From Styela clava (Eukaryota): a stretch of 64,000 nt of DNA. Made by a program: the position numbers and the translations under genes. The notes under the pieces are model-generated. The model was not told the origin of the DNA, made no database searches, and was given only the letters and a program-made list of their open reading frames with translations. This document shows positions 5,190-28,355 of the stretch, one piece after another (positions within the stretch are counted from its first letter, which is position 1; each line of letters opens with the position of its first letter). The stretch is taken from assembly GCF_964204865.1 (NCBI RefSeq), contig NC_135260.1, forward strand, positions 10,044,001 through 10,108,000, read 5' to 3'.

Positions 5190-5516
5190 TGGACACGGAA
5201 GTACCGGTACTGCAGGTCTGCGACCGCGAGTTTATATGATTGGCGTCAAGCAATACAGAGGCAATCGAGCAATACCGAAAAAAATATTTTCTTTTAATTA
5301 ATATAAGTTTTTGAAAAAATATCGGATGTCAAAGAAAATTTGATAATTAGAAGCCTTATAGAAATTCTGCCATTTTTGAGTAATGAAAATTTGAGATGAA
5401 TTGTACATTAACAGTGAAGAATAGCAATTTTTGTTCTCAACGTCAACAATCAACCCTACAACAACCAAAATCACAACAACAATAGCAAATCGATCCATAT
5501 AAACATTTCGTGGCCA
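5190..5516. mobile_element. Small TIR element (MITE) with TGGACACG(G/A)A...TTCGTG(T/G)CCA termini
   Basis: Inverted termini. It shares the internal TACCGGTACTGCAG motif with the 6683-6866 copy and the CGATCCATAT..TTCGTGTCCA right end with other copies. Confidence 0.55.
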
Positions 5517-6374
5517 ATATATTGCAAATGATTAGAGTTAATATATATATTAATATATTATACTTAGTTCAGCGGCTCTGAGTTTAAGCGTTTGTACTTT
5601 ATACAAATCCCGCAGACAAACTCATTATATATTGTATGAGAAACGCAAACGTTGTAACAACATTGATAAATTTCAAATAATTTAGCAATCACTGAACTAA
5701 TCGAATATTTCTGACAGCACGTTTGATCATATACAAATATAGATTATACATGGAATTGGCAACATCTAAATTGAATATCCGTGTGGAAAGATAGTGTCAT
5801 TGAAGTTTTCAAATCATTTTTAGAAACATAACAATAATGATATGAAAAAACTGACTCGAGTTTATTAGTTTAAAACCCAATCAACTCTCTGCGGAGGTCT
5901 CTCAATGCGCACACCAATTCAGCTCATTTTCCTCGGCTCAGGTCTTTTTCGCCCGCGACTTATCCCCATATATATTTGACACCGCATCTCTATTTTTATC
6001 ATCCACTTGTTTTTATAACTTTGAATGCATTAGGATTTATAGCAAAATAATAAAAAAAAGCCTGACCGCATTACAACCAACGGCCAAATCTCTTCAATAT
6101 TTGTGGGAAGAATTTCACATTGTTAAATTTTAGAAAATCACCATAAGAGAAAAGATTTGCACTCCAAGTAATACCTGTAATATTTTTATTGGTAAAAAAA
6201 CATTACATTTCAAATATATTTATTGCATAATAGTTATAACATTGTGAACATTTCATAATCATTTGTTCGGGCGTTTGTTTTGGAAATCAATTTCTACCAA
6301 TGTGGACATTGTATAATAGTCGTGGAAATCCATGTGTCCAGTTAACACAAAATATATCTGTTTTCTGATAATCC

Positions 6375-23841: not shown

Positions 23842-24734
23842 TGGATTTCCCTGGAAATTGCCCAAGAAATTGCAATGAGCAAAATTCTCTTGTTCATTTA
23901 ACCTTCCAACTGATGGAGTTTCTCGGGATACGCAATGTATGCGAATATCGGAAAGATTTCCATATACTGGAACTTTACTTTTGGTTCATGTGAATAAAAT
24001 GGGCTCACGTTTATCTCGTTTGCGGGGAAAACTTTACTTTCCGGTACAAATATTTTTTTTATATTGTACGTTAAAATAATTGTAGAATATCACGTTCGTG
24101 AACTCGACCAACACAAAAAAAAAATATACTGCAGGAAATTCAATTGTCATTAATGTCAAAACGCTATTCATATTTTTAAATGACCCGTGGAATAGACGCC
24201 AGATGTTGTTATTAGATCTGTCATAAAAGCTAAACGGACTATGTTTAACATATAATGTTATTTTGTTTGAGTTGCGACAATAAATTTGAACAGGTAACAA
24301 AAAGTACCCTCGGTTGTCACTCAATAGGTATTATTATGGGACAGTACTGGGTAAGCGTATCAAATCACGTTTTGATGAATATTTTTTGTCGTTAATGCCA
24401 ATGGTACTAAGACATAAAAGTCATTGAAATTTATATTTTCTAAAGTAATAAATATTCCGAATTCAGAATTGCCATATACTGGTAATTAATCCATAAATCT
24501 CTCTTTTTATGGTTTCATTGAAATAACAAATAATAAAATCCGGTAGGGAAACTTGATTTAGGCTAAGAAGAAAGTGTTTGGAATTCAGACAATGTCTACT
24601 GCTTCCTCATCTTCGTGTATATATATTCGTGTATTCCACAAAAACTCAAACCTATTATTATTATTTGGTAAAGCGATCGCTGATAATTATACTTAACGCA
24701 TTGTTAAATACCGGAAATTTATTACGTGTATAAA
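23842..24734 (+). promoter_or_regulatory. Putative inducible promoter/enhancer of the IL-17-like gene (kappaB-like cluster plus TATA)
   Basis: TGGATTTCCC at 23842-23851, GGAAATTGCCC at 23853-23863, GGAAAGATTTCC at 23950-23961, GGAAATTT at 24713-24720 and TATAAA at 24729-24734. Motif evidence only. Confidence 0.4.
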
Positions 24735-24763: not shown

Positions 24764-26439
24764 ATGAAGACTGCATTTGGGGTACATTGTTGTTTGAAGT
24801 TCAGATTTTGTTTTTATATAAATATGAATGATCATACTTCTAAATTCTTTGATTTTTTTTTTATAAATTCTACGTACAAAATTTGCGAGTTTGTTTAGCT
24901 AGAGTTCCCTGAGGCTCGATTTTCACCCCAAATTTTCTTCGATTTTTATTATAATTCACGGCACATATGTATATGATGTTTATTATAATTCTTTTAACAA
25001 TTGTTTGAAATATGGATGATTCAGCGTTGATATATTGTTTTAACATCAGGTTGTTCTTCTTCTTGTATTCATGCTGACGTTGTCGTATGCGGAGTCGAAA
25101 AAAATAAAGCACAAGTTGAGTACACGAGCGTAAGTGGCTAACTTTAAATCAATTATAAATGCATGTTATATATATTATTTATTTGAAAGATTTGTCGTAT
25201 TAATAATATTACTTCAATTTTGTATAGATCAGTTTTATATAACTAAGTAAACAATTAAATTATAAATTATACGATTGTGTTAATGTTTAATTCGATTTGT
25301 GTTTTTCGATTACTTGAGTAAACCGTTTGGGCGCAAGAATGTGTAGACATAATGCTAGCTAGAGGGATCGTAGAAAATATCTTGTCGAAAGTTTTTAGAT
25401 GTGCTATTCCTAAATTTATAAATAAAAAAGTGTAAAAAAAAAGTGTATTAAATAAGATTTAGCCAATATTGAAGATGTAGCATTTCTATGAAAGCGTTTC
25501 AAAATTATTCGAGTTATATACGAGAACCAATAGATATTTTAAAAACACTTTCAATATGGGCCACTAATTAAAAGAAAAAAAAAACAATTTTATGCAATTT
25601 AACTTGTGACCAAGTTAATATGAAACCGTAACCGCTTACTTTTATTTCAGATTTCTTAACCTTTACCCCAATAGCTGTACAAATACGACATTGCAAAAAG
25701 CAAGAGGATTTGCCGACTACGATCTTTTGCTGTAAATATATTTTTTATTTAACTTCGTCATATATATATTGATTTTTTTCATTCCCCCAATACTTAAAAT
25801 TAGTCGAATAATACCCCAATCAATTTCATCTACTCCAGATTCCACTGTAAAGATTTTGAGCCTGATAACTTCACTGCGGTTTTTACATCGAAAAATGAAG
25901 GATGCGGAGACACATGCACTCGTCCAGTGGACGGTAGTGCCTTGAATTTGACTAAATACAAGGTCCAACCAATTATTGCGATTCAGAAAATCAACAGTAA
26001 CTACACTGACTTTCGTGTCAAAGTAACCAAGGGATGCACTTGCGTGAAAAAGTTCGCCACATCGAAAACTCAGACAGAAAAAGAGGTTAAATTTCTGGGT
26101 GCTTCAGCCATTTTGTAAGTTTGTTTTACCATATTTTAAATAAACCCATAACTGTTGATTTTCAATCGAAAATTTCAAATAAATTAGGCATCGAGAATAT
26201 CGTTCAAAATAATTAACTAGTGGAACTGAAAAATGATTGACTATTGGGGTTGAATAATCTCGCTATAAGCCTCTTATACAACACTCTATTCCACTCTTTC
26301 ACTCCACTTTCATCTTCCAAAATAAATACCTATTTTTACCCAATTTTACACAAAAAATATATTTCTGTATTGTATTTCCAGGTCTAAAACGAGAAGAGGC
26401 AAAAAATCTCGACGCAACATGGGGAAGGGTAAAAACTAA
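24764..26439 (+). CDS. Divergent IL-17-like (cystine-knot) secreted cytokine, 5 exons, 170 aa
   Basis: Exons 24764-24781, 25050-25129, 25651-25731, 25839-26114 and 26382-26439 total 513 nt with phases 0,2,2,2. Protein: MKTAFGVVLLLVFMLTLSYA-ESKKIKHKLSTRAFLNLYPNSCTNTTLQKARGFADYDLLLFHCKDFEPDNFTAVFTSKNEGCGDTCTRPVDGSALNLTKYKVQPIIAIQKINSNYTDFRVKVTKGCTCVKKFATSKTQTEKEVKFLGASAILSKTRRGKKSRRNMGKGKN. It has a signal peptide and the IL-17 VxxGCTCV motif. Confidence 0.75.
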
Positions 26440-28355
26440 ATGGGATAAAAAATAACAAACAACTATAATGGCCCATATTCAATTTTGAATTACTAAATTA
26501 AACATGAATTTATTGATATAACAAACTCTTTAAAATCAATTTTATTAGAAAAATCTAGGAAAGCAATATCTTTTACCAAGTTTGATCATTGTATGAAGAA
26601 TTTTAATGAGCTCGATTTATATGCTGTCTACGCTTGATGAAAACTTTGCCAAATTTATTTCACTTAATATTAAATTATTATATATATATATTACTAGTAG
26701 TTGTATAACACCTACACGACTAAAATTACTGGTCAAAAACATGCGCTTCCGAGATATTTCAACGTTACTTCGGAATGACGGAATGACATTTCAAGCAAAC
26801 AGACTTCAATATGCATTTAGGATTCGTATATGGCACAAATAAATTTTAATATCGTTGATTTTTTTTTCATTTCCGTTTTAATAAATGTACGTATATGTAT
26901 GGTCTATTTTCGTTGTTTATTCATCGTACCTTCAATTATGGAAGTGTTAGTCTGTATAGTATACTTCAAAAAGAGCTCAGTGATACTACGAAATCAGTTC
27001 AAATTGCACTCAAAGTTAGGTTGTTTGCACTCATTCAGATATGAAGCGACAGGAAATTGTGCAAAGCAACATAGGAATTGAATATTGCATTTGTATTATT
27101 GTTTTGCGTTAGATTGCTATATATACTACCTTGCCAACCACCTCACACAGGGTGTAATAAATAAAGGCAATTAAGAGTGAAACAGAAGCAGACTACTACC
27201 ACCTGGCCAGTATTCGATCTATTGAATTACAGGGCATCCTTTTGGATAAAGTTGGGAATGATGTCATAACTGAAATCACGCGGAAATTACATTTATTTCA
27301 CACATTTTTCAACAGTATATGAATTATGTAAAGGTGTATTACGATGCTTTTATCCGGGCATTGTGTTCAAACCAGTGCGTGTAATATTTCGACACGTCTT
27401 CGTTCCGACACTGTCAGTGTGTATCCCACCATTCACAGGCCTTTATTTGTTATTGTGACGACTTGCCAAAATATTATACGTTGGTCCGATTCATTCTAGT
27501 CGTTAATTTCAATGCTCGTTCGACCATAGAATTTTTATTGTCACTGTATACTGCTCATATCAAAGAAAAGATACATCCATAAGAAAACATTTAGGAAGCA
27601 GTTCTTAACCTCGTCAATTTGTCTGAAATGCGCTATTCTTAAGCAGCTCAGAGGTCATTTCCATATATCAGTTTGTCATCATTTGTATACGATATAGAAT
27701 TTTGATTATATATCAGACGTTATAATCAATCGCTTGTCGAAATCGCGAGCCTTGATAGTATAGTCAGAGTTAGTAAGAATTCTACTGAATATGGTAACGT
27801 ATTTCATATTTTTGAAAAGAAAGTTGATGTGATTTCAAAATTACTAGGTATGATTACCGATAGGTTATGGTGGTTCCTGTTGTTTAGCTAAAGTGGGTTG
27901 CAACAGTACAATTGAGTCGATTTCCTGCTTATTTGGCAGAATTTAGCGCAGCATGAGTACGGCAGTATGCATTTTAGGATAAACAATACAAATTTTGTAA
28001 CTGATAGTTTGACTACATCAAAACTGATTTTATTTTATACTATAGTTATATTTTGGGCTAAGCAGTTACAAATTTTCAGCTTATAAAATCAGATTTGCTA
28101 AACCTGATTTCTAGTTGATGTGCATAATGTTGTAGCACGGTATAGTTAAGCCAGCAGTCTGTAATGTGTAGGTTTTAGTTTTATTCATCAGTATTCGTCG
28201 AGAACCCATTATATTAGGTGTATATAATGGTAGTAAAAAAGTTACTGGAAAGCAAGTACATACACGGATTTTGTATATTTCTCGAGAATTTTAAAAAGAG
28301 TATTTGCAACCATTGAATTAACTTAAAGTTGCAATTTTCATATATTTGAAATGAA

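Follow-up and report, generated by a model that had tools for sequence, protein, structure and literature searches.

LOC120347241 of Styela clava encodes a probable divergent member of the IL-17 superfamily from a paralogous family that the Pfam model does not detect

LOC120347241 of the tunicate Styela clava encodes a predicted secreted precursor that is probably a divergent ligand of the IL-17 superfamily, and whose function as a cytokine we infer. The evidence comes from a family of paralogs in the same genome, from profile comparison of this family with canonical Styela IL-17 exons, and from two genes that appear to stand between the two groups. The gene lies on contig C14 of the S. clava assembly, within a stretch of 64,000 nucleotides (the window; NC_135260.1, positions 10,044,001 to 10,108,000), and unprefixed positions below are those of the window.

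Direct reading and exon-by-exon translation gave five exons with GT..AG borders and consistent phases on the + strand between 24764 and 26439, with coding lengths of 18 + 80 + 81 + 276 + 58 = 513 nt, that is, 170 codons and a TAA. The features are as follows.

24729-24734, + strand: possible core promoter TATAAA, 35 nt 5' of the ATG, to judge from the sequence
24764-24781, + strand: coding part of exon 1 (MKTAFG, residues 1-6 of the protein), ending in phase 0, with the GT donor at 24782
25050-25129, + strand: exon 2, with AG at 25048-25049 and the donor GTAAGT at 25130
25651-25731, + strand: exon 3, with AG at its 5' and GTAAAT at its 3' border; C42 (in NSC), the sequon at N44 and GFADY
25839-26114, + strand: exon 4, the IL-17-like core, with AG at its 5' and GTAAGT at its 3' border
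25903-25917, + strand: first putative knot cysteine pair, C82 and C86 (TGC at 25903-25905 and 25915-25917)
26035-26043, + strand: second putative knot cysteine pair, C126-T-C128, aligned to canonical GCTC
26116-26118, + strand: in-frame TAA across the intron-4 donor (TTG followed by TAAGT), seen in the sequence and in the ORF 25927-26118
26382-26439, + strand: coding part of exon 5, the tail and the TAA stop, with AG at its 5' border
26497-26502, + strand: possible polyadenylation signal ATTAAA, about 60 nt 3' of the stop, proposed from its letters

The TATAAA, if used, would leave a very short 5' UTR. Exon 2, in which the signal peptide is completed (to A20, about 25091) and the mature chain begins, was matched by residues 6-38 of the protein in a genome search. 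Exon 4 contains C63, FEP, NFT, C82-x3-C86, RPVDG, YKVQPI, and G-C126-T-C128-V.

The joined model is identical to the S. clava entry XP_039273084.2 of NCBI (hereafter P0001; 170 aa), and the five in-phase exons proposed in an earlier note on this DNA proved right to the base. P0001 was the sole protein returned when we searched with the open frame spanning exon 4 (25804-26115), and the whole-protein analyses were done on this database entry. RefSeq describes it as "uncharacterized protein LOC120347241 isoform X1". The earlier note had called the gene hidden, pointing out that the list of open reading frames has no more than a 63-aa fragment of it; over the main exon, this fragment is indeed all that the list contains (ORF 25927-26118), but because the model equals an annotated protein (RefSeq carries isoforms X1 and X2, without a name), the gene is unnamed rather than hidden. 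P0001 was seen on a single contig. Three transcripts are modelled by NCBI for LOC120347241, and multi-transcript models from NCBI normally require RNA-seq support. With its five exons modelled independently, LOC120347241 looks like a real gene. RefSeq isoform X2 (P0002, 157 aa) begins at Met14, within the signal peptide, and retains only about seven residues of the leader; X2 either is not secreted or arises as a by-product when an alternative 5' exon is used.

By inspection, P0001 begins with MK, a 14-residue hydrophobic run and SYA/E, as expected of a secretory leader, and similar leaders are present in the paralogs P0006, P0007, L029, and L070. The mature chain contains six cysteines (C42, C63, C82, C86, C126, and C128), with none between C86 and C126, and four N-x-T sequons (N44, N70, N96, and N114), so that the signal peptide, cysteines, and sequons counted beforehand are all there. 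Exon 5 adds a polybasic tail of 18 residues, 10 of them K or R. Similar basic tails occur in the paralogs L029, L070, L075, and L079, where knot and tail share one exon. If intron 4 were retained, the product would have 153 aa, end in ...SAIL, and be devoid of the polybasic tail. Such an isoform is absent from the RefSeq products, of which X1 and X2 both have the tail, and because it is not on record, the tail-less form is speculation.

Direct database searches gave no family. With exon 4, P0001 or P0002 as the query, Pfam returned none at E ≤ 10, PF06083 included, and none with exon 3 or with six paralogs; rows for ATPgrasp_YheCD and DUF2963 were at chance level and were rejected. The HMMER check against PF06083 that the earlier note had suggested thus came back empty for P0001 even at this permissive limit, and P0001 does not reach the gathering score of the model (24 bits). 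When PF06083 was run over the whole S. clava genome, 32 exons scored above the cut-off, with zero at the LOC120347241 locus. That standard profiles could miss this gene had been anticipated, and both the Pfam search and the genome scan bear this out. A phmmer search of 1.84 billion representative proteins found only the query and P0005, and no relative outside S. clava; the match to P0005, a 956-aa CUB-repeat protein, was rejected as spurious, as it consists of one 22-residue stretch that recurs seven times. Searches of PDB sequences with P0001 and with the family profiles A1 and A3 gave chance rows and no IL-17, a protein search with a canonical Styela IL-17 exon gave no candidate protein, and our literature search did not find a paper on Styela IL-17.

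Relatives were found within the genome itself. In a genome search, P0001 weakly matched three exons on C13, which belong to P0006 and P0007, two secreted proteins of 137 aa annotated as "uncharacterized"; BLASTP of P0001 against P0006 gave an E-value of 1e-5 and 29% identity, with the cysteines aligned. Profiles run genome-wide (A1, then A3) brought the number of paralogous loci to about 50. These are clustered at C13:8.01-8.05 Mb and, in a very large group, at C13:8.96-9.23 Mb, with smaller groups on C1, on C6, and at C13:2.69 Mb, and a decayed match at C14:8.33 Mb. P0001 scored 39.0 bits against an HMM of 30 other members, as compared with a maximum of 10.4 for 500 shuffles of P0001, and hhalign aligned it to the family built without it at 97.2%. 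Because the leave-one-out profile still gives 39.0 bits, the membership of P0001 in this family is independent of its own inclusion.

The members share a common frame, which runs from an N-terminal cysteine through G/S-F-x-P-Y/F to a second cysteine seven residues on and x-x-x-P, continues with an NFT sequon in many cases and C-x3(4)-C-x-D/N-P-x-T/x-G, and closes with Y-x-x-x-P-I/V and G/A-C-x-C-V. Little or no variation is seen among members at the cysteines corresponding to C82, C86, C126, and C128 (the C82/C86 pair is invariant in alignment A3), and P0001 retains all family-invariant residues. The extra cysteines C42 and C63, the additional pair (NSC, FHC) noticed beforehand, are common to the family. 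The spacing C-x3-C of P0001 is C-x4-C in some paralogs, and the position of A54-D55-Y56 is occupied by EPY, APY or APF. Many members have an intron within the CxC, and several have basic C-terminal tails. P0001 is one of the most divergent members of the family.

Two of the C13 clusters may be described further. The larger (C13:8961957-9231437; L031, L033, L071-L074, and L080-L089) is a tandem cluster with at least 30 divergent IL-17-like exon matches, several of which have C-x4-C, as in canonical IL-17; its exons mostly end in ...C-R at an AG/GT donor, and therefore an intron splits the CxC. In the cluster at C13:8.01-8.05 Mb, L022 and L024 (C13:8022088-8022427 and 8045710-8046003) are decayed or rearranged copies, one lacking the cysteine framework past D-P-I-T and the other having a partial internal duplication.

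The link to IL-17 was established by profile comparison. As the canonical set, we drew 28 Styela IL-17 last exons from the PF06083 matches. The hhalign probability climbed steadily with the depth of the profiles, from 13% (6 family sequences against 8 canonical exons) to 80% (11 against 8), 95.5% (11 against 28; E 1.5e-8), and 96.4% (31 against 28; E 1.2e-9, score 51.7, 65 columns). Column-shuffled IL-17 alignments with preserved cysteine content served as the null; they gave a mean of 9.3, a standard deviation of 2.2, and a maximum of 16.9 for the score of 51.7, and a mean of 11.0 and a maximum of 26.0 for the earlier score of 33.8. The family without P0001 still reached 96.4% against the canonical exons, and a control with seven Styela TGF-beta domains gave 0.04-0.16%. 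P0001 alone gave 40% with hhalign and 11.1 bits with the HMM against canonical Styela IL-17, which is above all 500 shuffles and weak when taken alone. In the alignment, C82/C86 fell on the canonical C..GC, TRPVDG on IDPxTG, KVQPI on SxPI, and GCTCV on GCTCV. The register that the earlier note had assigned by eye to VTKGCTCV, QPI, and CGDTC..P.DG was therefore recovered independently. By this comparison, the divergent Styela family is homologous to the IL-17 domain at an hhalign probability of about 96%.

The family is further connected to IL-17 by individual genes. The A3 HMM matched the exon C1:22958640-22958864 at a genome-wide E-value of 1.9e-4, and this exon is itself positive for PF06083 (32.6 bits vs. 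the 24-bit cut-off). Using hhalign, A3 aligned with its ORF (L066:2608-2949) at 82% over 77 columns with five cysteines in register, and with the neighboring gene at 75%. RGFADY...FHCKDFEP of P0001 was placed on DNVSPW...NCKNMDP of L066 without a gap, with ADY on SPW; this is the register proposed in the earlier note, which had pointed to an 18-residue spacing from R to P. The genes concerned are two adjacent single-exon IL-17 genes, L066:2608-2949 and 5467-5844 (C1:22958640-22961720, - strand), of which one passes PF06083 at 32.6 bits and the other fails at 18.3 bits; their ACKCV end and extra cysteine at W+7 are held in common with the divergent family. Like P0001, they have the extra cysteine seven residues past W/Y, the C-K-x-x-x-P stretch, an N-terminal cysteine about 15 residues before SPW/ADY, and a Y-T-I-x-P-I strand; unlike P0001, they keep SPW, have C-x4-C or longer, and end in ACKCV. 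Judging from these shared features, the two genes bridge the canonical and the divergent groups.

Between the family and the canonical SPW-bearing exons (A4), hhalign gave 0.2%, that is, no profile similarity over the N-terminal half, and the SPW/CPW motif is absent from P0001, which has A54-D55-Y56 in its place, as the earlier note had read. Canonical Styela IL-17 genes vary at this position too, with SPW, SPY, APF, and APW. An intron position in common with canonical Styela IL-17 was considered and rejected, as the canonical intron lies 11 codons past W and that of P0001 only 4 past Y; the C13 paralogs lack the latter intron.

In a maximum-likelihood tree, the canonical IL-17 genes formed one clade (100/100), and P0001, on the longest terminal branch (1.95), joined the two bridge genes on C1 (C1:22958640 and C1:22961493), which are its nearest relatives in the tree (support 91/76); because of the long branch and the few columns, this placement is to be taken cautiously. 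Seven SEFIR exons were found above the cut-off in the S. clava genome. It is unlikely, though deserving of some weight, that P0001 descends from IL-17 and has acquired a new function (it might, for instance, bind matrix or tunic, act against microbes or serve allorecognition) without IL-17 receptor signaling. The length of its branch, the loss of SPW, a tail so rich in K and R with counterparts in paralogs, and the presence of about 50 family loci vs. only about seven SEFIR exons would all be consistent with such a history, but the parts of P0001 that are conserved are the receptor-facing core motifs of IL-17.

Feature comparison and structure prediction lean in the same direction as the profiles. 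Among ESM Atlas features, IL-17 clusters ranked first for P0001 (23 of the 30 nearest, score 0.91) and for the paralog L029, which is 22% identical to P0001 (24 of the 30 nearest, score 0.91), and NGF/Spaetzle clusters stood lower in the lists (0.86-0.89). AF2 with 6 sequences gave a pLDDT of 47.7 and meaningless Foldseek matches. With the 11-sequence family alignment, the model was of low confidence overall (pLDDT 58.3, pTM 0.35), with a core at residues 81-130 of pLDDT 70-80 and a long predicted hairpin (100-112/117-130). Foldseek found no match in the PDB at E ≤ 0.001 for this model; about 30 of the best 50 rows were IL-17A/F or IL-25, at E-values of 0.3-0.9 and TM-scores up to 0.43, which are below significance. 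A Foldseek-independent search listed IL-25 (Z 2.8) and IL-17A (Z 2.6) amid unrelated rows of equal Z. After VIA re-alignment of the top 1000 chains of Foldseek, IL-17A/F and IL-25 chains occupied 47 of the best 50 rows with Z-scores of 2.4-3.0, again below significance, and the best match (Z 3.0) covered 65 residues at an rmsd of 3.3-3.5 Å and 20% identity, over model residues 55-132. An AlphaFold monomer searched with Foldseek, as the earlier note had advised, thus brings IL-17 chains to the head of the lists at scores below significance, and the predicted structure leans towards IL-17 without establishing the cystine-knot fold.

These sub-threshold scores, together with the NGF/Spaetzle clusters in the Atlas lists, are what could be cited for a different origin, namely membership of P0001 in a different cystine-knot family (NGF/Spaetzle/coagulogen, PDGF/VEGF or TGF-beta/CTCK) or convergence on a cysteine-rich fold, the IL-17 signal arising from the pattern C...CxC. 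We consider this very improbable. Shuffles that preserved the cysteine columns never came near the real score, and the TGF-beta control was negligible; the similarity extends to the non-cysteine motifs D-P-x-T-G, Y-x-x-x-P-I, and R/x-x-P; and HMMER links the family to a PF06083-positive exon. At E ≤ 10, Pfam reported no NGF, Spaetzle, PDGF or TGF-beta for P0001 (PF00243 and PF16077 being the NGF and Spaetzle models), and the six-cysteine knot of TGF-beta (CxGxC...CxC) was not seen in P0001 by hhalign, by cysteine pattern or by Pfam. That the model is an artefact of gene prediction, or a copy in decay that is not expressed, is scarcely credible: although P0001 occurs on a single contig only and the family includes decayed copies (L022 and L024), all five exons join in one intact reading frame, their splice sites are canonical and their phases agree, all family-invariant residues are retained, and three transcripts are modelled by NCBI.

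Against IL-17 itself stand the lack of a PF06083 match at E ≤ 10, of an IL-17 match in the PDB, and of SPW in P0001, and the introns of its gene, which are not at canonical Styela IL-17 positions. P0001 nevertheless appears to carry the four-cysteine framework of chordate IL-17 (C...C, then CxC). Because the cysteine framework and the profile homology are found and the Pfam match and SPW are not, we regard P0001 as a divergent superfamily member by homology; it would be a new variant of the IL-17 superfamily rather than a standard family member. The reading as an atypical IL-17 subfamily, already put forward in the earlier note, is supported by the profile comparison (96.4%) and by the HMMER bridge.

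Compared with chordate IL-17 (PF06083; human IL-17A/F and IL-25, Ciona IL-17-1/2/3), P0001 is likewise a small secreted precursor, with four putative knot cysteines (C...C......CxC) in the arrangement described for chordates, which lacks the third knot disulfide (PMC8353272), the C-x-D/R-P-x-T/D-G turn after the second cysteine, the Y/S-x-P-I strand, a terminal GCTCV, and the putative knot encoded by the last large exon. It differs from chordate IL-17 in having no PF06083 match, ADY for SPW, C-x3-C for C-x4-C, 5-6 additional residues ahead of the first knot cysteine, the added cysteine pair C42 and C63, and the 18-residue polybasic tail on an exon of its own. The IL-17 repertoires of sea urchin, mussel, and oyster are also lineage-specific, tandem, and fast-evolving, with very low identity (PMC8353272, PMC4517768). 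They are Pfam-defined and usually have 6-8 cysteines with CPW (PMC8353272, PMC4517768); unlike them, the divergent Styela family goes unrecognized by the Pfam model, and its extra cysteine pair is a different one.

In one survey, large expansions of IL-17 were reported only in molluscs and echinoderms, and Ciona was credited with 7 IL-17 sequences (6 in the second count column of the survey; PMC8353272). The at least 32 canonical PF06083 exons of S. clava are far more than the 7 of Ciona (PMC8353272). Canonical clusters were observed on C3 (2.19-2.23 and 14.84-14.87 Mb), C5 (14.72 and 15.02-15.08 Mb), and C2 (18.35-18.38 Mb).

If P0001 is a divergent IL-17-superfamily ligand, as we favor, its precursor would consist of three parts, the signal peptide (about 20 residues), an N-glycosylated core (about 110 residues), and the polybasic tail (18 residues). 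The core, which appears to keep the four chordate-type knot cysteines, the C-x-x-P-x-x-G turn, the Y-x-x-x-P-I strand, and GCTCV, may adopt an IL-17-like cystine-knot fold with disulfides C82-C126 and C86-C128, by analogy with chordate IL-17 (PMC8353272), and the extra C42 and C63 may pair with each other or link chains. The protein is a long-branch member of an expanded Styela family, which comprises about 50 loci and goes undetected by PF06083. By analogy with known IL-17 cytokines, it would act as a secreted glycosylated dimer signaling through a SEFIR-domain IL-17 receptor; through its basic tail it may attach to matrix or cell surfaces, or the tail may be trimmed by a protease.

A bolder reading, which we think distinctly unlikely, is that of a tunicate-specific, IL-17-derived family with a new C42-C63 disulfide, within or between chains, and exon-encoded polybasic tails, in which intron 4, by being spliced or retained, would act as a switch between matrix-bound and diffusible forms. 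In VEGF and PDGF, splicing switches the products between matrix-bound and diffusible forms. Were this true, the IL-17-type signaling system of S. clava would be much larger and more diverse than known in any chordate.

On the favored reading of a divergent IL-17-superfamily ligand, an "uncharacterized" RefSeq protein gains a functional hypothesis. S. clava holds its canonical IL-17 exons, at least 32 in number, and in addition about 50 divergent loci that domain databases miss. If these ligands are functional, domain-based surveys would undercount fast-evolving cytokines, and IL-17-type signaling in a chordate without adaptive immunity would be far more diversified than such surveys suggest.
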